Assembly: GCA_030704615.1 (NCBI GenBank)
Contig: CM060732.1
Location: 31,992,001-32,056,000, forward strand
Reading direction: 5' to 3'
Origin: Takakia lepidozioides
Taxonomy: Eukaryota; Plantae; Bryophyta
Length of the DNA: 64,000 bases
Shown: positions 1 to 41,786 of the stretch, piece after piece
Numbering within the stretch: the first letter of the stretch is position 1
Layout: every line of letters starts with the position of its first letter
Program-made: the position numbers and the translations under genes
Notes under the pieces: generated by a model
Told to the model about the DNA's origin: nothing
The model's database searches: none
The model's input: only the letters and a program-made list of their open reading frames with translations

Positions 1-780
1 ATGCCTCCCCGCCCAGCCGCAGCACAAGATCGCCGCTCATTAGAAAAAAAATGAGGCCAACGAAAGGCTGTCCCATGTTCAACTTGGCCCCTATAGCCGC
101 TCAAGGCGGGTAGAGACATTTCAAATATCCGTGGTCGATTTGAATGGCCAGCGTGGCAAAATTGGTTCCACGTATGACGTCTCCACCGTGACGATGTTTC
201 CACCTTGGCAAAAAGGATTCCACGTAAGATGTTTTGGCGCGCTTCCGCGCTGGGTTCTGGCGCGTTTTCTCCCGCCGGGTTTGCGGGCTTCTTCCCTCGC
301 CCGTTTCTTCCCCCTAGTTCTCGCAGCGTTTCTTACCATCTTGTACGCGTCGCTTCGTGCAGTGTGCGTCGACACCCTGAAGCACATGATCATGTCCTAG
401 AACAGGTGCTACTTTAATCTTGTTCCTCATATCAAGCAGTTCAATATCATCATACACTTGTTGTACGTTTGGCAAACGGTCCTCCAGAAGGTCACCTTTA
501 TCCTCGTGATGGTTGCTAGATTCCATAATGAACTAGCAGTCTGAATTGTTGATCTTTGGCTGAGTGCTGAGTGCGGTCTTTTCCTCAGTTGGTCTAGACA
601 GCTCTTGGAATCAATTAAAGTCCAAGTTTTCAGCTCCTAATCCCTAAACAATCACATTCGTGTGTGGGACAGCTAAAGTGAAGTTAACTCTTGTCAATGC
701 GATGGCACTGGCCCGGGAGAGAGAGATGGCAGTTACGTACAAAGTGACAAAGAGTTCATTTATCATGTGATGACTGGCAG

Positions 781-3488: not shown

Positions 3489-4793
3489 GTGTATCTCTTT
3501 CCTTATTTTGTCCTGGGAGCATAAGTGTAAACTAGATATGTTAATTTCAGCTCATGCTCTGTTATAGGTCAGTCATTCTCTTTGCCAACATCGAGATGTG
3601 ATAAGTGGTCCCTACAATCAAGAATGGCTTTGGTGTTGATTGTGTGTTGATTTAGTCATACAAATTCATCTACCAGTCTATCCTGAATGAATCATTTAGT
3701 TGGAGGACTCGTAGATAATCAAGATGATTTCTATGGTGTGATGACATCACAAGAACCATGGGGGGGGGACTGTGCAGCAGCAGACCATTCAAAGGCTGCT
3801 ACCTGCAACCATAAGTTGCTGCTATGAGTGAGAAGCATTCAAGTTGTCCGTCTGCCAAGGCTGCAATGAGTAGCTTGCGAAGACCTTTTCACATATTTCT
3901 CACCAGGTGCTGGGACAGGTGCTACAGCAAACAACGTTGTATATGTTGTTGGCCCTGATATCAGAACATGGTGCCATCAATAGTAATGCGAAAAGCTGAA
4001 TATAAGAGCTCATCTGGGGAGGACCTCATCTGGTACTTCGGGCCGGATGACATTTGTACAGAATGTAGAAAAGAATGTAGAAATGACATGGTTCTGTTTG
4101 CACATTTGAAGTGAAGTTTGGGACCTTGAACCAAGAAAGAGGGACTGGTCAAAATCAATTCTGACCTGCATTGCTCAAGTTTGCAGTTGGGATATCGGAT
4201 GGGAAGTGGAACTTTTGTAGGTCAAAATTGCTGAAGCCACACCTTGAGCAATGTCATTCGAGGCCGTGGTTGACAGAGATCTGCCTTTCATGGACACCTG
4301 TTCTGTATGATAGCAAGTGCACTCATCCCTGTAAAATGTACCACCATTGGTATCTCCATGGAAAGGAGGGATCAGCTGAGCTCAGGTGCTGGATAACAAC
4401 TTGTTTCCCCACTTGGCTGGCCCTTCATGAACTTATGTTAAAATTAACCGGGAATGGATTGGGAAAACTTCTTATGCTGGTTTTTTATTGATTCATGCAA
4501 ACCAGAAATTATATGCTAACCCCTGATACAAGAAAAAGGAGACAAATAAGGTGCCAAAGTCTTGAACCCCTCACACCAAAGTAGCCAAAGATAGAACCAA
4601 AATCACTTGGCTCCTTAACAAAGTGTTGTAGATGCATATGGCCTTATCTCTGAATTAAAGTTAAATCAAATAAATCGATACTTGAATCAGATAACAGAAG
4701 CCACACTTTATGAAGTGTTGTGGCAGGTCATACACCAAATCCAGACGTGCGATCAGCATCTGAACTTCAGGCAATTCCTAATACCCTCACAGA

Positions 4794-5059
4794 CTTTTGT
4801 AAAATTGGAGCACTCCATTAGTCAGACAATACCAAGGAATTAACAAATGGGATACTGGCTTTTGTAAAATTGGGGCACTCCATTAGTCAGACAATACCAA
4901 GGAATTAACAAACGGGATACTGGCTTTTGTAAAATTGGGGCACTCCATTAGTCAGACAATACCAAGGAATTAACAAACGGGATACTGGCTTTTGTAAAAT
5001 TGGAGCACTCCATTAGTCAGACAATACCAAGGAATTAATAAACATGATACTAGCTTTTT
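4794..5059. repeat. Tandem repeat, 4 x 65 bp, immediately upstream of the transposase ATG
   Basis: Unit cttttgtaaaattggRgcactccattagtcagacaataccaaggaattaacaaaYgggatactgg starts at 4794, 4859, 4924 and 4989. Confidence 0.95.
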
Positions 5060-5084
5060 ACCTTCAGGCATTCAGCTACTGAGA

Positions 5085-8000
5085 ATGGCATTGTCAGAGA
5101 TCACAAATTTGCCGTTGAGCAAGCAGCCTCCTTATAACGTGCGGGTTGCAATTGATGGAAAGTATGCGATTTTGAGAGGTCGATTACTAGAGGAGCAGAC
5201 ACCGAAGTCAAACTTCTCTAAAAAATGGAGAGCAGGAGGTACGAACATAGATCTCTGGCTTGATTCATCCCTTTATCCTAGTGACCCAACTACAGGAGTA
5301 CGTCCCAACATGAGTTCCATAAGAGACTTGCTTCAATTCGTGGGAGATGGAGAGGAGGGTTTTCTGGGTTATGTGAAACACCTTCAAAGTGTTTGCTCAA
5401 CCAATGTAGAGACTGCAAATTGGCGAATTCTATTCGAAGCTGCACAACAGCAAAACGCAGTAGAGATTCAAAAATTGAGGGATCAAATTCAAGTAGAAAG
5501 TTCCTCCCGCATGGAGAGTGATTCATTGAATGCTCAAATCACCACTCTGGAAAGCAACATGAGCAACATGAGAGCTTCATATGAGAGTCGGCTGCATAGT
5601 CTGCGGTTACAAGTTCAAAATAAAGAAGAAGAAGTTCGTGTAATGGATGGTGTTTGTGAAGCTCAATTGGAAGCTGTACGATCAATTCATGCGATGGAGT
5701 TAGATCAGATTGAGAGTTCCCACAAGTCCGAATTGAGATCTGTTGCAGCTCACGAGGTCTAGGGCTTGGAACAAAAACTAAGTAAGGTTCACAACACCCC
5801 CTATGGACCTAGAAGCCAAATATGCCAGAGGAACAATCTTGCACCAAACGGTGGACAAGCCAAGGCGCTTAGAAGATTGGCACGGAGTATCATTATGCCA
5901 GCTACTACACAAAAAGTGCAACAAGAGAACGCTGCATCAAACAGCAAGAAGAGGCTTTGTGGCGATAGAAGTACCCAAGAAGAATGTGGAAAAGTCTTCG
6001 CTCAAATTCTATCAAGGACTGAGGTAGATTCGATGTTGCATGTGCCTACTTTTACTCACGTAGGTGCAAAAATGGCAAATCAATATCTCAATGAAATCGG
6101 CAAACAAGTTGGGCCCAGTGAGATTTTGGAGACCTGTGACACAAATGGGATCACCCAAGCATGTTACAGTGCAATTTACAAGAAATTTAAAGGTGGTGTA
6201 AAAGTTGCCTCCAAAGGGATGAGAGTAGGATGTCTGCCCAATCCGCATCGAGTGTCAAAATTGCGCAAGGAATTGAATTCCAAGCTTCAGGATTTCGTAG
6301 GTGAATACTATCACTTGAACAACAGCCTTGAAGTTCCTAAAAAGGTCAAGCACGGTGAAAAAAATGATGCTACTCGAGTGACACTATCCGAGCACAATTC
6401 TTTTTTCGCGGATGTGGAGCAGGTGCAACATACCATGGTCGAACTGTATGAGATCACACTTGCCGGTAAGTTTTCTACATCGTGCACCTATAAATTCTGT
6501 GTTTTTAATCTTTAATTTCATATATTCTTAGTACTGATTGCTTCATTTTGATTTTACAGAATTGAAGGGGAGCCCTCTACAGTTTGTCTTGAAGCTTGAT
6601 GAGGCAGAGATCATTCATGCCCAAAAGCTAGAAAGAGTGAGTATTACCCTCATGAACCGTGCATTAGACCCATCCATCACTCCGGATAGTGAAAAGTTTT
6701 TCAGTGTGCAAAGCGAGAGAGAGATTTGCCTATAGCTTGTTTTCAAGTGGCAAAGGAGAACACAGAGGTTCTGAACTGGGTGTTCCAACAAACCAAACTC
6801 CCTTCGCTAATTCAAGTCCAAGAAAATGGGCAACTTCTTCACGTCCCAGGTTTTGGTGATTACAAGGTAGAGTGGCACATGGCAGCCGACATGAAGACAA
6901 TAAAAGCCATGTTCGGTTTGAAGGGAGGTGCAAATAGTTTGCATTCTTGCATTTATTGCATGCAAGAGAGAGTCAAGTTTGTAGAGGGATCCATGAAGGA
7001 CGCCGCTGCTGCTATTAGTAAGCGTTCCCATACATGGAATGGAGGCTTATTTGCCCAAAACATTACTGCTAAACCTGTAAGTGGGAGTCAGGGAAAAGAT
7101 CGTTGGAAACCAGTGTTGCCCATCCCCATTGAAAGAGTGCATATTTGCACTTTACACGCCATGAATAGGATCATTGAGAAAATGGTCCACCTCCATTTCA
7201 TGTTCGTCTGGACCATTCGCGATAAGAAATTACAAGAGTTAGCTATTGCTGACATGGAAAAAGTGTTGTCCAGCACTGGTGCACACAGTGGTTTGGTTAA
7301 GATCATGAAAGATGATCAACTGTCTGGCAAATTGAGTAATATCCCCAACAAACCTTTGTTCAGCGGCCCACATGCTGCCAAACTCTTTAAACCGAGTACT
7401 TTAGAGGGAGGCTCCGACAAGTTGTACATTGATGTGGTAAAGTTCGAGCACAACCACACTGAAGATGGGGCATGTAGGAGAAATCGATTAGCATGTTGGG
7501 TTGCATTTGATAAATTGCGACCCTATCTTTCTGGCCTTACACTCACCGGTGGACAAAAAGCTGAATATAAGAAATGTGTGGAGGAATTCAGACGCGCTTT
7601 CATCAAGAGTTGGGGGGAGGGTCCAGTTACACACTATATTGTGAGTATCTAAAACATCCCTTGATATTGATTGGAATGCTTATAGTAAAATTTTGCATTT
7701 CAATCATAGCACTTATAGATGACAATGCTAATTGTTCATGTTGATTGGAATGCTTGTAGTAAAATAGCATAGATGACAATGCTAATTGTTTAAGTTGATA
7801 ATTTGCAGCATGTATTGGTCAAGCACACCCCGTGGTTTGTTGAAAGGTATGGAAGCCTATCTGTCTGGTCATGTCAAGGAATGGAAAACTCGCATCACGC
7901 AGCAAAAACGGCATATCAGCGTCATACTCAACATGCTGGAACAAAATGCAAGAAAAGTCCTTTGGTACAGACCTATGAACACTGGTTCAGGTTCATTCAA

Positions 8001-8240
8001 CATAGATTCAGAAACAAAAGCCTTCAATCGAATGTTGCCATTGGTAGCCTTAGAGGTGAGGAGGCAATTCAGGCCCGACGTATAGCATCCTTAAACTCAA
8101 GCGCAGCAGCGCACAGCGCTTTGTGGAGATTAAGATGCACTCGGGTTGGCAGTAGATGGGTACCAAAGTCTGAAGAGCTGATTGTAGAAGAGCCGATTGA
8201 GGAGTCACCGGAGGAGCCAATTGCGGACTCCCAGGTATGA
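5085..8240 (+). pseudogene. RAG1/Transib-like DDE transposase gene, spliced, with 1 premature stop and 1 frameshift
   Basis: Exons 5085-6465, 6560-7640 and 7809-8240, GT-AG introns in matching phase (possible short extra exon 8351-8377). In-frame TAG at 5760-5762 and a 1-nt loss near 6726. Motifs in RAG1 order: coiled-coil N-terminus; ITQACYSAIYK..LPNPHRV; FVLKLDE (first D); AADMKTIKAMFGLKGGANSLHSCIYC (second D plus CxxC); ICTLHAM; VTHYIHVLVKHTPWFVERYGSLSVWSCQGMENSH (HxxxxH plus catalytic E). Confidence 0.85.
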
Positions 8241-10212
8241 GGTTCAAAGTTTAACCACTTCATGCGTTGTAAACAACATTCGGTACTTTCCTATGTTTTG
8301 TTTTGCTTGTTTTGATGTACGTGTTGGTGTATGTGTTGATGTTCTCACAGGTGCCCGCATCATTCGTTGCGAGCTGACAAAACTGCGATGGAACCAAGCC
8401 TAGGTCCTGCAGGTGAGGGATGCATGGGTCTTACCTGGCCTAGGTCTTACATGTAAACACAAGCTACCTACAGACCTAACTATACCTGCAACATTAGTAC
8501 CTCATCAACAAATTCTGGCTTTTGGTCTGTGTCAAAGCAGTCAAGTGCCTTCTTGGCAGCTTTAGCCTCAGCTCGAGCTTCTTCAGCAATAGCCTGCAGG
8601 CAGCTCCCTCATGTTGTCATGTTGTCATGTCAGGCAGCTCCCTCACTGAGGACAACACCAAGACCACCAAGAGTGAGTATCTCCAGCTTCTGTGGATCCA
8701 CCAAGCCAAGCCTCCAGAAGTGCATGCGTTTGGTTACATCACCATCATACTTTGGTGGATTGTAGCCAGAATGCCTAGTGCAACTAGGCTCCAAGACAAT
8801 ACAAAACAAAGAAATAGCTCAACTAGTTGTCTGTCATCATCTCCATCAGACCACAACCAATGTAGGAATACCTGGGAACAATGGTGTACCTCAAATCAAG
8901 TCATACAAAGTAGAAACTGTAAGTTCACTCATCACCCGTTCCTTCACAGTCTTGTCCACCCATGTACAACAAGTTCTTCCTCCTTCTTCATTCAGCATCC
9001 CTCCTTTCCTCCATCCTATCCTGTAATATACTTTGCCATCCAACCTTACACTACAAAGAAGACTAGTTGCTTTCACTTCTCAGCAGAATGACTACTCTTG
9101 ATGAACCTGGTATGACACCTTCCAGTAATATCAGGCACCTTGAACGAATTCACAACTAGGGTTTGTCAACTAGGGCAAAAGATCGATAAGCACGTCTCCC
9201 TAACCCGCTCTCCTACGAAGCACCGCTCTCCCGAGCATCACCGCTGTGCACTGAACACTGGAATGTTTTGCTGTTACCTGGTTTAGCTTCTTTGAAATGG
9301 GAACACAATACCAGCTGTGCTTGGGGTTGAGCCTAACTAGTCTGAACCTGAAGCTGCAGCCGTTGCCACTTCTTCTCCTTGTACAGTGCTCTTTGTACAG
9401 TACATATAAACATACCCAGACCAAGACCAAATGCCCAAAGATATCGTTGCCCAAAGAATTCTCCAAGTCCTCGTTTGTTGAGTCCTTCATGTCCTCCATG
9501 CTCGCATGTTCCATCTCCTCATCGCTCGAAAGCTTCATCTTGCCTGGACTTGCTGCTCAGGGGGCGGGCGGTCGTCGCTGCCAGTGGCGGATGCAGATAC
9601 TGGTTTTACGCACACACTCTCCCTATCTAAGTATTTAGTGTGAGTAATGTAACAGATAGTGAAAAGCAACTCACCTGTCAACTAACCTTCACATTTACAA
9701 ACCAGACTCATACAAAATGGAAGCATGGATAGAGAAGCAGACCCCATATCAATCTGCGCACCAAACATCCATCCATTCAATCTCATCTAAATCTAAACTT
9801 GAGTATAAGTATAAAGAAAGTTTCCATATTTTCAACGGATCATCAGAGCATTCTTGGTTATCATGGCAATCTTAAACACATCGCCAAACAAAAGGTCCTC
9901 GGTTCGAATCTTTGAACAATTCACCTCACATAATAAAGGTAATATTTTTTGTTCAACTAATTTTTTGTAAATTGCTCAACTAGTTGTCAATTTTTTTGTA
10001 ATTGCTCAACTAGTTGTCTGTCACCATCTCAATCAGACCATAACCAATGTAAAAAAGGAGGGAACAAAGGGGAATTTTTCATATAACAAAGGTAAAACTA
10101 CCAACCTGAAACTTTAAAATGTCACCTAAAATGTCATCTAATGTTGCAAATGTCATCTAATCTTGTGGCCCACGGACCTAATGCCCACAGCCCTAGAGTC
10201 TAAGGCTACACT

Positions 10213-11605
10213 TTAGGATGCATTGGCCACAAGTCGTAGTCGCTTCGGAGGCAACACATCGACAGCTGTGTACTTCTTCTCATTTCTAATGTTTACCTAT
10301 CAACAAGAAACATGTAATTTTGTTAGAAGCTGTCATAACATTTGAAGCTGTGAATGGATTACCATGATTGCTGATAACTAATTCCACATACATTTTTGGA
10401 CTTGATCCCATCTTCATCCACTATCGTGAAGTCCTCAGGAATGTCTGAACCAAAAGCAATCGTAATCTCATGTCGAATGCTTGACATTGTCCAATGTCGC
10501 CCAACCTCAATTTCTTGCTGTCTTGCATCATATTCACAACATAAACTGACCATCTCCACAAACTGAACCTGATCCATCGTTTCCCATTTGTTTTCGGATA
10601 TCATGCGTTGCCGATTGAATTGAAATGTGGCGTATAAAACAGATTGGCCAATGTGATATCTGAATCTCAGTGTTGAACGATCGACAACACATCTAATGAC
10701 ATCGGCTCCAATGGTGATTTTTGTATCACATCCAGTATCCATTAGTGATTCCAACAGCTTCTCACATGGTTCTTTGAAAGTGAACATGGTATTGCTCTTA
10801 GAGATATTGTTGGCCACTGAAAATAGATCTACCATTACTCCGATTGGCATAAACCATTGTAAGTGGGTTGATTTGCTTCCTGTTCTGGGTTTCATAGAGG
10901 ATAAGAAATCAGACCGCAACTTCAGTCTGAAAGACTCACTGGTCGCCATGTCCGGTAATGGCCAAGCTGGATCACTAAAACCAGGAAGAGGGATCGGCTG
11001 CACTGTTCCAAACTCAGATCTACCATTGTGTGGGGTGTAAAATGCATTGTAGAAGTACACATGATTTTGCAGAAGCTCCTTGTGCGTTCAATTTCCACGG
11101 CAAGCCTCACCTACTTCGGCGTGCACCACATATAGAACATCCATTATACTCTTCGGATCAATCCAATCTTCAAAAGTGGAAAGGTATAGGTCTGCATTGA
11201 AAACCCCACCCTCATCATATTGTTGTTCCACTGTGCACAATACAAGGTGAACTTCATAGCAAATAATGTAAACTTATGAGGAAAGTTAGACATCTTACAA
11301 TTGCAAGCGCCTCTGCTGAAAGCTACATCTGGAGGCAAATCGAGTTGCCGTTGCATGTAAGTATGTTGAACACAGATTATGGATACCACTATGGATCCAC
11401 CTTCGAAACGAAACTTCAGCACCTTCGCCTTGTACGCCCCCTCTGTTGTAGAAGTTCCGCCATGCTTCGATGAATCTTTAGCATGATCGCCTCTTTTACC
11501 CGGCATCAATGCTACCCAAGAGTTACTCTCCACCATCATCCAATTATCATCCTCGTCTTTTGAATTGAACAATATCACAGATCCTACTTCACTTCGTGGC
11601 CGCAT
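10213..11605 (-). pseudogene. Spliced gene with BAH-like domain, an unknown middle domain and a C-terminal ubiquitin-like segment
   Basis: Exons 11605-11299, 11191-10392 and 10296-10213 join in frame via GT-AG introns, with one internal TGA at 11088-11090. BAH-like pattern: MVESNSWVALMP..AYKAKVLKFRF..ICVQHTYMQRQL..NYLYLSTFEDWIDPKSIMDVLYV..VYFYNAFY. C-terminus EIEVGRHWTMSSIRHEITIAFGSDIPEDFTIV...VLPPKRLRL is beta-grasp-like. The true start may lie further upstream. Confidence 0.65.
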
Positions 11606-13778
11606 TGTGTTTCGGATTTGCAATTCCCTCTGTATCCCACCAAGGAATCAACTTAGAATCTGTTTATACCTTTGTGAGGAGGGATCCCTTTCCCTATATA
11701 GGCATCCCTTTCCTCTATATAGCTCTTCACAGATGGCATTTATCTCCTGTCTATGAGCTCCCAGCCATAAAACCCCAACGGGGCCAAGGCTTTAGGCTCA
11801 ACCTCAAGATTTTGAAAGTTGATGAATAGAGGTGCAGGGACTCTGTGAAGTGGAGGTCCTCTCTGATGAGAATACCCTGGACATTATATCAGAAAATGGA
11901 TATTGCATATTGGAAATTGGATATTGGATTTTGATATATGAAAAGATGGATATTGGATATTGATTAGATATTTGATATTTGAGAGGTAGGAAGGGAGACA
12001 GACTTCATTTGAAACATATTCCAGACTGTTCCATTTTCACCCCGAAACATGGCTGCCAGTCATCACCAAGCACTGTCCAGTTTATCCATCCACAGGGGCT
12101 TGAAATTCAGTTCAATGTCTCTTCTGAAATCAAAAGAAAAAGCATTGCCAGAACAGCATGCATTGTTTAAGGCACTTGTCCAAAAACACATCAGTCAGTT
12201 CTTCCTGCCTGGAGGCACTTGCCAGTACAGCTACCCGCCATGATCAATGACATCACTAGCATATTGGAAGTCTTCGATGTCATTCAGATTATACGAGCCA
12301 GTCTCTTGACCAGCCTCAAGAGACAATCTCTTTTGAAGAACGGATTTTTCAAATGTGACTGAGTATAAGTTACCCCCAAATGAATCGTGGGGTCTCTGAA
12401 GTTGCATGGATTACCATTGCTACCATGGCTACCAGTTGGGATAGTACCCTGGTGGATTAGTGGGAATTGACTTTCACAATGTTCACATGTGTGAATAATT
12501 GTACATTGCTGTTGGCATTTCATTCTTGGTCAAGAAGATATACACCTGCTGCAATAGCGAAGATATTGGAGACATGTAACAACCTATTGAGGATTTTGGT
12601 TTTTTTGTCACCCTTCAAACTTTTGAGGGCAATCAGTTTACATCACAAATTGAATGGCTAGGTGCCCTGAAAATTGAGTAGTCTATTACCCGCCCCATGC
12701 TGCTTTACAAGGTCTTATACTAAACTGAAATGGACAGGGAAAGCCAGGCCTTGGACGCTCCAGTGTCATCGCCAACCCCAGTATGTATACGGTCCTATCA
12801 TTACTTCCTTGCCACATACAAAGCATGCAAAGTACTCACCCAAGCAGGTGCCGACTCCTTGGCAGCGGGCAGAGTCAAGTGCTTGGGGTCGACACCTCCT
12901 AGCAATGGTCTGGTTTTGTCACTGTAGCTTGCTAGCACTGACCTCACCTGTGTCAAGCCACAACTAACCACACTTCAGTATGGCAACATGTAAACAAATG
13001 GGAAGAGTTTGAGGAGTGAGGAAAGGGCAGAATGAACAGACCTATGAACATTGGTGTTTAGCTCATACACAGAACCACCAAGGGGAGGCAAAAACGAGGC
13101 ATTAGGAGCCCAGGTGGGAACAAACATTTTTCTAATTATTTGTGTAAGTTATGAGTTTGCCTCCATGTCTTGGTTCGAATGATGTCTATAGAACTTAAAC
13201 GCTCAAGACTCTCAGACTCCAACACGTAGAGAGTGACTCCCACATTGGCTATGGCGCACACCGCCACAGTAACTCGTTTGCAAGTGTGAGATGGATCTGC
13301 AGCTGCACTAAAGCAACAAAACGCATACACTTGTTTAAGCTGATTCCCCTCTCTTCCTCTATACAATACCGAGAGGCACAGGTACACACAACATTACTCA
13401 ATATCAGCCATGTTGATGGTTTGGCGATTCCCAAATGCACCATGCTGCTTGAGAATAAACTGGGAAATGTGGAGCAATGCAAGTTCAGTCACGGGCCCAA
13501 CTTGGCCACCGGTTCTATCCCTGTTTGCAGAAACATTGTAATGAAAGGACAACTGGCAATTTCTGCTGCCAAATCACTTAGCAAAGATTCAATAAATAGC
13601 CATGTAGCAGGATGCCCATCCTTAAAGCAGCCATCCCCTTATCTGCTTTCCTCACATGAGAACATCCACCAATCATTAGACCTCCCATACTGAGACCGCG
13701 TCGGACGATTACAGGGAGGGTGTGACGACCAGATTGTAGCAACTTGATAATAAAAGAGAAAAAAACGAGAGGTCGTGC

Positions 13779-13828: not shown

Positions 13829-15193
13829 TTGTTACCTACTAGAACAGCTTCACATGCAAGCCCTCTTGTGTGCGTTGCTTTCGTCTATAATCTGGAGATC
13901 TTGGAGTGATTTGTGAAAGAAACCAGGGAGCAGCTGAGCAGCCAGAGTCTCAACCCTGGACCCAAGTACCTTACAAACTCTACGGAAAAGACCTTGCGCT
14001 GCATCTTACTTTCATGCCCTACTGATGAGGAACAGCCTCGGTACAGACAGTACAGTAACCTCAGCTTTTGCAAAGCCAAGCAAGATTCTACCTTCACCGA
14101 ACAACTAGGGTAAAATGTTTGCGCCTTGTCCTCCTGGAGCCAACCATTCGTGGCGATCAAGGATAGACGCAATGCAAAACGCAGCAGGAGTTAAACACCA
14201 AGCAAAGTCAACAAGAGCGGCGAGGGCCTGGATGGCGCCTCGCACGGAGAAGCTCAAAAGCGCGGGCGAACAGCGCCTCCCGAGTGCCCCCTGCAAGATG
14301 CGCGGAGTCCGGCGCACAGACCAGCGAGGGAAAGGCCACAAGCGAGGGAGAGGCCACGGTTTGTGTTGAGCACCACAACTGTTGAGAGCTTCCAGCTTGC
14401 AAGGTGAACGATCGCGGGAAGGCCCAAAGCTTGCAACGATGGCAGGAAAGCCCAAAGCTTACGTGACAATCGCAGATCGCACTTACACTTAAAAAGTCCA
14501 GGGAAACGTAGAGTGGAGACACTCTTGTCCCTCGCGATGCACCTACGTGCCACCGCCGGTGCCAGGATGTACTATTTTTATCGGACCCGTAGGAGGTCTC
14601 CTTAGTACAACAACCAAGAATGGGCAGAATTCAAGAAAACAAAACTCGCAGCCTTCGTAAGGGTCCATTAAACTTCTAATGCAGCAATTACACACGGACT
14701 GTCACAGTTATGGCTCCCCCCTGCCCGCGCTGTTCATTCAATATACCAAGCCGTCACCCCTCTACAACAACAATCTCTCCTCGAAACCCAGCCATCATAT
14801 CTGGTATGCCCCCTCCCAACCCAACCCGTAACTGTCTCCCTCACCTCAACCTCTGCCACCCACTCCTCCACCACCCTTACTACACTCACTCGTGCACCAC
14901 CCACTTAGCCTCTTCTTCTGCCATTCCACTCTCTTTATACCACCCCCTACTTCGCTCCCTCTGTAATCCACACACTCACTTTTGCCCTCTCCTCCTCTCA
15001 AACACAACGTACAGTTTATTCCCATTCTGCTTCGTACTCTACCACTCCCCCTCTCCACGCATGACTAGCGCACAGGTAGCATCCAAAAACAGTCTCACAC
15101 TCCCCATAAGCAATCCCACTCCATAGACAAAAAAAAACTCACAGTCGAAGGTCACCTATTAGCCCCAGCCGTGTCCGCAGCCCCTCTGCCACA

Positions 15194-39596: not shown

Positions 39597-41786
39597 ATGG
39601 TGATGGCCAACGAAGCTCAGGCGACCATGAACGGAAATGCAGCGAAATCCTTGCAATACCATACTGGAACTGATTCTTTTTGTTCTGCAGACGTCCAGCT
39701 TGCGGACCCTCTAAACTGGGCGCGAGCAGCGGCAGCCATGAAAAGCAGCCATTTGGAGGAGGTTAAAGATATGGTGAAAACATTCTACGAGGCAACTGAA
39801 GTAGCCATTGAAGGGGTGACTTTGACGGTAGGTCAGGTGGCAGCCGTGGCCCGCCGACCAGAAGTGAGAGTGGTGCTGGATGCTGCCAATGCAAAGAATC
39901 GAGTAGATGAAAGCTCCAACTGGGTTCTGCAGAAGATCATGAACGGGGGTGATATCTATGGCGTCACAACTGGTTTTGGAGCCACATCTCACCGGCGTAC
40001 ACAGCAAGGAGTGGAGCTCCAGCGAGAGCTAATCAGGTTTCTGAATGCGGGAGTCCTCGGCAAGGGCAACACCCTCCCGACGTGCACCACGCGGGCAGCC
40101 ATGCTTGTGCGCACCAATACATTGATGCAGGGATACTCAGGAATTCGGTGGGAGATTCTGGAAGCCATGGAAAAGCTTCTAAATGCAAATGTCACACCTA
40201 AGTTGCCACTGCGCGGGACCGTTACTGCTTCCGGAGACCTTGTTCCATTGTCTTACATCGCGGGACTGCTTACGAATAGACCCAACTCCAGGGCCGTGAC
40301 CGACGACGGGACGGAGGTGTCTGCCTTGGAAGCTCTGAGACTCGCTGGGGTCGAAAAACCGTTTGAATTGCAGCCGAAGGAAGGCCTGGCCATTGTCAAC
40401 GGAACAGCGGTGGGGTCAGCCTTGGCTTCCACTGTGTGCTTTGATGCCAATGTGATGGTGCTACTGGCTGAAGTTCTTTCTGCGCTGTTCTGTGAAGTAA
40501 TGCAAGGAAAGCCCGAGTTCGCTGACCCGCTGACGCACAAACTAAAGCACCACCCAGGCCAGATGGAGGCGGCTGCGATCATGGAGTGGGTGCTCGATGG
40601 AAGCTCCTACATGAAGGCCGCTGCACAGCTGCATGAGACTGACCCGTTGACGAAACCCAAGCAGGATCGATATGCGCTGCGTACTTCCCCACAATGGCTG
40701 GGCCCGCAGGTGGAGGTAATTCGCAATGCCACCCACGCCATTCAAAGAGAAATCAACTCGGTGAACGATAACCCAATCATCGACGCTGCTGGGGACAGAG
40801 CCCTTCATGGCGGAAACTTCCAGGGAACCCCCATTGGAGTCTCCATGGACAACATGCGGTTGGCCATTGCTGCGATTGGGAAGCTCATGTTTGCACAGTT
40901 CTCTGAGCTGGTCAACGACTACTACAACAATGGGTTGCCCTCAAACCTGAGCGGAGGACCTAACCCCAGCCTGGACTATGGCATGAAGGGAGGGGAGATA
41001 GCCATGGCTTCCTACCTCTCAGAACTGAACTACTTGGCCAACCCAGTGACCACCCACGTACAAAGTGCTGAGCAGCACAACCAGGATGTAAACTCGCTGG
41101 GATTGGTGTCCGCCCGCAAAACTGAGGAATCTATTGAGATTCTTAAGCTCATGAGCTCCACATTCTTGGTAGGGCTGTGCCAGGCCATCGACCTTCGTCA
41201 CATCGAGGAGACAATGCAGGCGACAGTGAAGCAAATTGTTTCCCAGGTTGCCAAGAAGACGCTCTTCACAGGCAGCAACGGTGCACTTTTGCCAGCACGG
41301 TTCTGCGAGAAAGATCTGTTGCGCGTGGTGAATTGCCAACCTGTTTTCAGCTACATCGACGATGCAACTAGTCTATCTTACCCCCTGATGCAAAAGTTGA
41401 GGGAAGTGTTGGTGCAACATGCTCTCCAAAACCCCAAGAACGAGAAATTGGAATCCACCTCTGTGTTCCACAGGATTTCTGCCTTTGAAGAGGAGTTGAC
41501 CACATTCCTGAAGGCTAAGGTACCTCTAGTCCGTGAGGCCTACGATAACAAGGGATACTCCCCGGTACCGAACCGGATTGAGGAGTGCAGAACTTACCCT
41601 CTCTACAAGTTTGTGCGCTCCGAGTTGGGCACGCAGTTGTTGTCAGGGTTGAGAAGTGTGTCTCCGGGGCAAGAGATTGAGAAGGTGTATGAGGCCATCT
41701 CAGAGGGAAAACTAGTGGCTCCTCTCCTCAAGTGTGTTGAAGGATGGACTGGAACTCCCGGGCCTTTTGCCCATGGCAGCTGCTAG
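39597..41786 (+). CDS. PAL: Phenylalanine ammonia-lyase, intronless, 729 aa
   Basis: DPLNW start, YGVTTGFG, the MIO-forming [32 protein letters not shown] and HNQDVNSLG; ELIRFLNAG carries Phe at the selectivity position, which favours PAL over TAL. Confidence 0.98.

Follow-up and report, generated by a model that had tools for sequence, protein, structure and literature searches.

A disabled, intron-bearing transposase gene of the CMCT clade, probably from a Lanisha transposon, in the moss Takakia lepidozioides

Which group of mobile elements does a broken, intron-containing transposase gene in a moss genome belong to? The gene in question occupies positions 5085-8377 of a 64,000-nt stretch of Takakia lepidozioides DNA (GCA_030704615.1, contig CM060732.1, positions 31,992,001 to 32,056,000, forward strand), which was analyzed in full and is called the window here. 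The first-pass annotation, made from the sequence of this stretch, had placed the gene in an undescribed plant lineage around RAG1 and Transib. We conclude that the locus is a disabled transposase gene from a cut-and-paste transposon that belongs to the CMCT clade, has introns and exists in many copies; most likely it is a member of the Lanisha superfamily (probability about 0.72). The gene is a real RAG1-fold transposase of a plant that falls into a recognised clade, and probably not a new RAG1/Transib lineage. The CMCT clade (Kojima 2025, PMC12730594) comprises EnSpm/CACTA, Mirage, Chapaev, Transib, Plavaka, ESTA, Lanisha and RAG1; its signature consists of three catalytic residues plus two cysteines and three histidines, where C(2)C and H(3-4)H lie in the interval from the second aspartate to the glutamate, and its elements mostly end in 5'-CA..TG-3' and generate duplications of 2-5 bp (PMC12730594). 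Lanisha is a cut-and-paste superfamily published in 2020-21 from the moss Ceratodon purpureus (Maumus, McDaniel & Carey 2020, Repbase Reports 20:2521; Carey et al. 2021, PMC8245031; GenBank MT647524). It was classified by remote-homology tools alone, and its share in that species is 1% on the autosomes and 5.8% on the V chromosome (PMC8245031). With this superfamily already in print, the description of the gene as an undescribed plant lineage is probably wrong.

The open reading frames (ORFs) and the sequence give a gene of four exons and three introns on the forward strand, with ~970 codons in total (Table 1). It comprises a frame-0 piece at 5085-5759, the TAG at 5760-5762, a further frame-0 piece at 5766-6465, a frame-1 piece at 6560-6726, a frame-0 piece at 6726-7640 and a last piece at 7809-8234. 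In exon 1 a conserved N-terminal region is accompanied by a stretch of coiled coil (weak coiled-coil Pfam match) and a basic, pre-catalytic region. Two GT-AG introns had been proposed earlier and both are supported by relatives. The junction of intron 1 agrees with the contiguous relatives P0068 and P0218, which read '...YGIT..E..G.L.FV.KLDE' across it. Intron 2 is proven by spliced contigs from the runs X6 and X7, which join 7640 to 7809 (both are presumed RNA runs; the run type was guessed by the tool, though the spliced joint argues for RNA), and also by P0103 and P0141, in which THYI and HILYAH follow each other without interruption. The position of this intron is conserved across the plant clade, and the genomic homologues all end at 'THYIVS'. 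A third intron and a short last exon were added here. The spliced length comes to about 970 codons, compared with the earlier estimate of roughly 950 amino acids.

Two lesions interrupt the reading frame, one stop codon and one frameshift, as had been reported. The frame break in exon 2 is a 1-nt deletion within a Trp codon (TGG) at 6727/6728. All of the 22 aligned homologues read 'EIWPIACFQV' across this site (22/22), and the extra G is present in related DNA contigs and presumed RNA contigs of the same organism. Because the 22 homologues and the contigs of close relatives retain the frame there, the deletion can be called from these alignments with certainty. The in-frame TAG at 5760-5762 sits in a poorly conserved linker (about 5661-5844) between two blocks that align to other copies; since RNA covers none of this linker, the TAG may instead fall in a short unrecognised intron. 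The locus is a recently disabled copy that cannot make the protein, and the earlier view of a recent inactivation is borne out.

The locus is also one copy of many: 222 DNA contigs with 90-99% identity map on 4 kb of it, which shows that the gene is multi-copy. Moreover, the spliced X6 and X7 contigs show that a close relative of the window gene is transcribed and spliced. This relative is ~95% identical and lacks 81 bases (6848-6928, 27 codons) in frame, and the absent stretch takes away the second catalytic aspartate. The ends of the stretch are AG..GG, and for this reason the gap looks, from the sequence, less like an intron than like a deletion derivative. A transcribed relative without the 27 codons around the second aspartate would also fit a locus that is the pseudogene of a domesticated host gene, located outside any mobile element. 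However, the many diverged DNA copies, the catalytic residues that are invariant in the family, and a sister family whose elements have inverted termini and lie at unrelated sites as near-identical copies of 17-19 kb (see below) all speak against a host gene, as does the fact that the window copy itself is broken; we consider this explanation extremely improbable.

The motifs KLDE, AADMKT, CIYC, CTLH, H..H and MENSH follow each other along the gene in the order given by the first-pass annotation. The second aspartate, CxxC and CxxH are invariant among 23 aligned homologues, while CxxC, CxxH and H-x4-H are invariant in the plant clade. P0103 and P0141, which represent the C-terminal half of the nearer clade in contiguous form, carry these motifs without interruption. 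A search with the core exon gave 66 unnamed proteins with 41-63% identity, and a Pfam domain was found in none of them. In a profile search of 1.8 billion representative proteins 556 family members were found, again none of them named and none with a Pfam domain. Almost all of the members are exon-sized fragments that stop after 'THYIVS' at the GT of one shared intron, which identifies these entries as genes called on eukaryotic DNA. The family is deep, with members ranging from 25% to 58% identity, and its contiguous members keep LDE, (A/C)D(M/L)KT, H.C(S/T)(L/M)H and W..Q(G/A)ME(K/N)SH. Contiguous members of a more distant clade are P0133, P0213 and P0240 (about 600 amino acids). This distant clade retains D, D, CxxH and E and has lost the CxxC and H-x4-H pairs, and because of this loss it probably has no zinc site. 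A word-based protein search returned no full-length relative with both zinc half-sites. The members of the distant clade (P0133, P0213, P0240, P0158 and P0193, and the contigs L003/L004) are apparently intron-less and come from soil or plant-associated metagenomes. L003 and L004, which carry a distant intact homologue, proved to represent a single locus and offered no usable ends. A further protein, P0115 (NCBI), is a gene model of the fern Adiantum nelumboides that joins DUF7794 (PF25070) to a fragment of the transposase family, probably a chimera created by annotation across a transposon relic.

Pfam searches with all window exons and 13 long relatives gave nothing significant. Among 50 family members the RAG1 family (PF12940) was the sole family that matched more than one member (2/50, P0103 and P0141). 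This match covers positions 553-593 of the Pfam RAG1 model and falls exactly on the stretch from H-x4-H to the glutamate (E 0.003) and reaches at best 16 bits against a cut-off of 25, and the window exons gave no match to it. PF26100, PF26101 and PF26104 matched no family member, and no match to PF18759 was found in the family. The profiles PF02992, PF13960 and PF13963 matched none of the 50 members at E values up to 10, and the first two also had no match in the window exons. A WMYPFER-type ending, which the first-pass annotation had described as absent, is indeed not present; W..QGMENSH is found instead. The motif set that had been taken as RAG1-like is common to the entire CMCT clade including CACTA (PMC12730594).

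For the fold we modeled two natural relatives, P0133 and P0001, with family alignments; P0001 is 58% identical to window exon 2. In both models the aspartates are placed on beta-1 and immediately after beta-4, which is the arrangement of RNase-H-fold transposases, and the triad of two aspartates and a glutamate (DDE) that the window gene carries on this predicted fold is conserved in the family, together with the C/H motif set of the CMCT clade. When the P0133 model was compared with solved structures by Foldseek, all 49 matches with E<=0.001 were RAG1, BbRAGL (ProtoRAG) or HzTransib (best E 9e-11). In a second, non-Foldseek search the top six matches of the P0001 model were again RAG1 (13.8), BbRAGL (12.3) and HzTransib (10.1), with the next match at 6.4, and the model aligns to RAG1 residues 574-942. 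The fold of the models corresponds to that of the RAG1 core (pre-RNase-H, RNase-H, ZnC2 and ZnH2), and their closest fold among solved structures is that of RAG1, BbRAGL and Transib. Sequence searches against solved structures gave no RAG1 match, whether started from the core exon, from the C-terminal exon or from two family profiles. A comparison of ESM features for window 6726-7640 gave 0.95 for RAG1 clusters (186 shared features), 0.93 for CACTA and 0.91 for Plavaka, and for P0133 the RAG1 clusters scored 0.90-0.93. In the ESM Atlas fold search with the P0133 model the best rows were unnamed clusters from Rotifera and Mucoromycota; the template-modeling (TM) score was 0.49 for CACTA (379 residues aligned) and 0.49-0.52 for RAG1 clusters. 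On this evidence the protein sits firmly in the CMCT clade, only slightly nearer to RAG1 than to CACTA.

These results bear on the possibility that the gene is a true Transib/RAG-like member, the first in land plants, and sister to animal Transib/RAGL over the other CMCT lineages. The only strong matches in the PDB are RAG1, BbRAGL and Transib, RAG1 clusters rank above CACTA in both ESM-feature searches and slightly above it in the Atlas fold search, and Pfam RAG1 is the only weak family that recurs. In addition, the spacing of H-x4-H and the distance of 20 residues to the glutamate fit the corresponding residues of RAG1, which we take to be H937, H942 and E962. However, the PDB holds no CMC structure, and because no other members of the clade have solved structures any CMCT protein matches RAG1/Transib first. 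ESTA transposases did exactly this, with RAG1 as the first match in HHpred (PMC12730594). A RAG1 match in a structure search therefore does not distinguish Transib from other lineages of the CMCT clade. The TM score for CACTA models (0.49 against 0.49-0.52 for RAG1), the Pfam RAG1 score of 16 bits below its 25-bit cut-off and the lack of a match to PF26100, PF26101 and PF26104 point the same way, as do the ends of the sister elements described below, which are CATTAG and not CACNGTG and are flanked by a 5-bp duplication in 0/4 copies. Finally, the published tree puts Lanisha outside a Transib clade with 100% support (PMC12730594). Overall, we regard true Transib/RAG membership as unlikely. Of the earlier reading, a DDE transposase with spliceosomal introns and with RAG1, BbRAGL and Transib as its closest fold stands, but the specific RAG1/Transib placement does not, because CACTA models and RAG1 structures fit the fold to a similar degree.

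The mobile nature of the family can be seen most directly in a sister family, of which four copies were taken from a public assembly with plant-type contigs. The transposase core of this family is 47% identical to that of the window at the amino acid level. The four copies are 96-98% identical to each other and 17-19 kb long, and the exact limits of their similarity are 34-bp inverted repeats, 5'-CATTAGAAAAC...GTTTTCTAATG-3', with the ends CATTAG...CTAATG (in full 5'-CATTAGAAAACTTT...AAAGTTTTCTAATG-3'). Because near-identical copies end at the same bases and these are the inverted repeats, the sister elements are transposons; they are not of the Transib type. All four copies have the 5'-CA..TG-3' ends of CMCT elements. 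A comparison of the flanks revealed no target duplication of 3, 4 or 5 bp in any of the four copies (0/4). Two of the copies share 2 bp, which would fall within the CMCT range, and a duplication of 5 bp as in Transib or of 3 bp as in classic CACTA is disfavoured. The CAC-initiated terminal inverted repeats (TIRs) that the first-pass annotation had suggested looking for were not found in this family. The sister elements also hold unnamed ORFs of 554, 185 and about 396 amino acids and an internal tandem-repeat block.

A second conserved gene, here called ORF2, lies tail-to-tail with the transposase gene in the window. It shares 45% identity over 256 amino acids (E 5e-76) with an ORF inside the 17-19 kb sister elements. 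Since both the sister elements and the window carry the two genes, transposase and ORF2 travel together. Their relative orientation differs between the window and the sister family, in which ORF2 (L007:19411-20253; L005:19082-20128) is on the transposase strand about 8 kb downstream. ORF2 has no Pfam family, and its sole PDB match is weak (E 0.6, 2kan, deposited as uncharacterized protein); a kelch or PHD match was not found. Pfam gave no support to readings of ORF2 as 'BAH-like' or 'ubiquitin-like'.

A layout with two genes is also known from En/Spm, which carries TnpA and TnpD, and the element could accordingly be a divergent CACTA/EnSpm (CMC) element within a long-known plant superfamily. 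The architecture of D, D, CxxC, DxxH/CxxH, HxxxH and E is common to both, the CATTA ends are one mismatch from CACTA, the elements are long, and CACTA clusters turn up in the Atlas fold and feature searches. On the other hand, these clusters rank below the RAG1 clusters, the three CACTA-associated profiles PF02992, PF13960 and PF13963 match no member even at E 10, W..QGMENSH replaces a WMYPFER-type ending and a 3-bp duplication is seen in none of the four sister copies. Placement within CACTA/EnSpm is therefore quite doubtful.

The assignment to Lanisha is based on the host, on the distribution of the family and on clade features. In the tree of Kojima, Lanisha families occur in a fern (DrEr), in Rhizophagus irregularis (RhIr) and in the coral Stylophora (StPi), and the superfamily is found next to Chapaev with weak support (PMC12730594). 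The nearest unnamed Atlas clusters of our family come from Cnidaria, Streptophyta, Rotifera and Mucoromycota, and a fern occurrence is given by P0115. Hence we observe an abundant moss element with relatives in a fern, Mucoromycota and Cnidaria. By these features the family probably belongs to the Lanisha superfamily. A CMCT lineage apart from Lanisha and not yet described would also be compatible with an identity argued from host, distribution and clade features, and with a deep family (25% to 58% identity) that includes a distant clade without zinc ligands. However, it would require a second high-copy, unclassifiable moss CMCT family that shares with Lanisha the unusual host range of fern, Mucoromycota and Cnidaria, which is less parsimonious, and we consider it improbable.

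Several points weigh against a Lanisha-type transposon at this locus. Membership in Lanisha is argued from host, distribution and clade features. For the ends of the window element itself there are weak candidates at 38 and 14681. The left candidate lies upstream of the transposase gene in the right orientation and is not significant alone (Table 1). Inverted-repeat searches and searches for TIRs with target-site duplications around the gene returned chance-level pairs only, including a CACAGTG-containing 10-mer pair at 1431/11235, and a self-comparison found no second copy in the window. In the sister family, the flanks show a match of 2 bp in two of the four copies and nothing longer. The P0133 model has a predicted local distance difference test (pLDDT) value below 50 from residue 507, which covers the helix bearing the glutamate. 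Finally, the run type 'RNA' of X6 and X7 is a guess, although the spliced joint favours it.

If the element is a Lanisha transposon of the CMCT clade, as we prefer, the undamaged gene would encode an RNase-H-fold DDE enzyme with the first aspartate on beta-1, the second just after beta-4 and the glutamate on a helix about 330 residues past the second aspartate. The long helical insertion between the second aspartate and the glutamate would be pinned by a C2H2 zinc site (CxxC and H-x4-H), as in RAG1. By analogy with RAG1 and Transib, the intact enzyme would bind the CA...TG inverted ends and nick them, and the element would be excised, probably via a hairpin on the flanking DNA, and then reinserted. 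The element also carries ORF2. A bolder and rather unlikely idea is that Lanisha-like elements are the plant-side sister lineage of Transib/RAG, with the RAG1-type zinc site and H-x4-H spacing as shared features and with ORF2 as a functional partner analogous to RAG2 in ProtoRAG. If this were true, the two-subunit architecture of RAG-type recombinases would predate the split of plants and animals, or would have arisen twice.

Further features surround the transposase gene (Table 1). Five tandem units of 65 bp run into its start codon, with middle copies 94-97% alike, and are possibly promoter or sub-terminal repeats of the element. At 8590-8614 several RNA and DNA contigs of relatives diverge from the window, with loose ends on both sides; either local divergence or a splice site in the gene on the minus strand may explain this. 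A 26-nt inverted match links this area with 2447-2472. Rfam gave no matches in the window. At 39597-41786 (+) we observed an uninterrupted ORF of 729 amino acids for an aromatic amino-acid lyase (PAL-type, E 1e-146), located between copia and gypsy/chromovirus remnants at about 30-33 kb and 50-63 kb. Since the window contains this PAL gene and copia/gypsy elements, the land-plant setting assumed by the first-pass annotation fits. The labels of the sequencing runs, which name one organism and a plant metagenome, agree with this.

Table 1. Features of the transposase locus in the window and positions of the sister copies
Feature	Position	Strand	Basis or remark
Candidate left terminus CATTAGAAAA...	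38..71	+	22/34 to sister terminal repeat, best in whole window; not significant alone
Tandem repeats, five 65-bp units	4724..5113	+	Repeat search; DNA contigs of the organism at high depth
Exon 1	5085..6465	+	ORFs and sequence; tblastn matches to L001/L002 flank the TAG on either side
Intron 1	6466..6559	+	GT..AG, 94 nt, phase 1; sequence and contiguous homologues
Exon 2, catalytic core	6560..7640	+	D1, D2, CxxC, CxxH; family alignment; frame broken at 6727/6728
D1 in KLDE	6598-6600 (codon)	+	Exon 2 alignment
D2 in AADMKT	6888-6890 (codon)	+	Exon 2 alignment
CxxC (CIYC)	6948-6959	+	Exon 2 alignment
CxxH (CTLH)	7146-7157	+	Exon 2 alignment
Intron 2	7641..7808	+	GT..AG, 168 nt, phase 0; spliced contigs and contiguous relatives
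Exon 3	7809..8234	+	H-x4-H, catalytic E, acidic tail; alignment
H-x4-H (H-VLVK-H)	7809-7811, 7824-7826	+	Exon 3 alignment
Catalytic E in MENSH	7884-7886	+	Exon 3 alignment
Intron 3 (added here)	8235..8350	+	GT..AG, 116 nt; joint 8231>8348 (cut +3), run X6
Last exon	8351..8377	+	8 codons and TGA; sequence and X6 joint
ORF2, tail-to-tail with transposase	10362..11647	-	At least two exon pieces: 11147-11647, 10362-11087
Candidate right terminus, reverse complement CATTAGAAGTTTAATG...	14648..14681	-	21/34 ungapped, weak; local score not above background
Sister copies	L005:7406 to L008:17682; L007:7424 to L009:16299; L010:1680-18657; L006:7404 to L011:17110		

Our findings show that RAG1-fold transposases make up a large protein family that had no annotation (556 representative clusters without a Pfam model or a name) and is abundant in bryophyte-type genomes, and link it, through the probable assignment above, to the barely characterised Lanisha superfamily. 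This is useful for annotating repeats in the genomes of mosses and ferns, in which such genes get called 'hypothetical' or are fused into host models, as in the Adiantum protein P0115. ORF2 as a conserved second gene and an element size of 17-19 kb are descriptive details that are new.

Compared to known systems, the family differs from RAG1, BbRAGL and HzTransib in several respects. The sequence identity is only 13-17% and Pfam RAG1 stays below its threshold; the sister elements end in CATTAG instead of a CACAGTG-like heptamer and show no 5-bp duplication; the partner gene in the window has no kelch or PHD match; the sister elements are far larger (17-19 kb) and the window gene has spliceosomal introns. 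With CACTA/En-Spm it has in common the plant hosts, the motif set of the clade, the CA...TG ends, long elements with several genes and a fold similarity of TM 0.49, but there is no match to PF02992 and PF13960, the glutamate motif is W..QGMENSH and not WMYPFER, and no 3-bp duplication was seen. Plavaka and ESTA (PMC12730594) are likewise divergent CMCT transposases with RAG1 as the sole detectable structural relative, and the Plavaka cluster scored 0.91 in the feature search; they differ in that their hosts are fungi, that they are often linked to TET/JBP genes and that ESTA makes TA duplications. By host, distribution and clade features no difference from Lanisha is known. Both are cut-and-paste DNA transposons of mosses that reach high copy number, escape the standard profiles and carry C(2)C and H(3-4)H as members of the CMCT clade, and the fern, Rhizophagus and coral families of Lanisha come from the same phyla as the nearest relatives of the window family.

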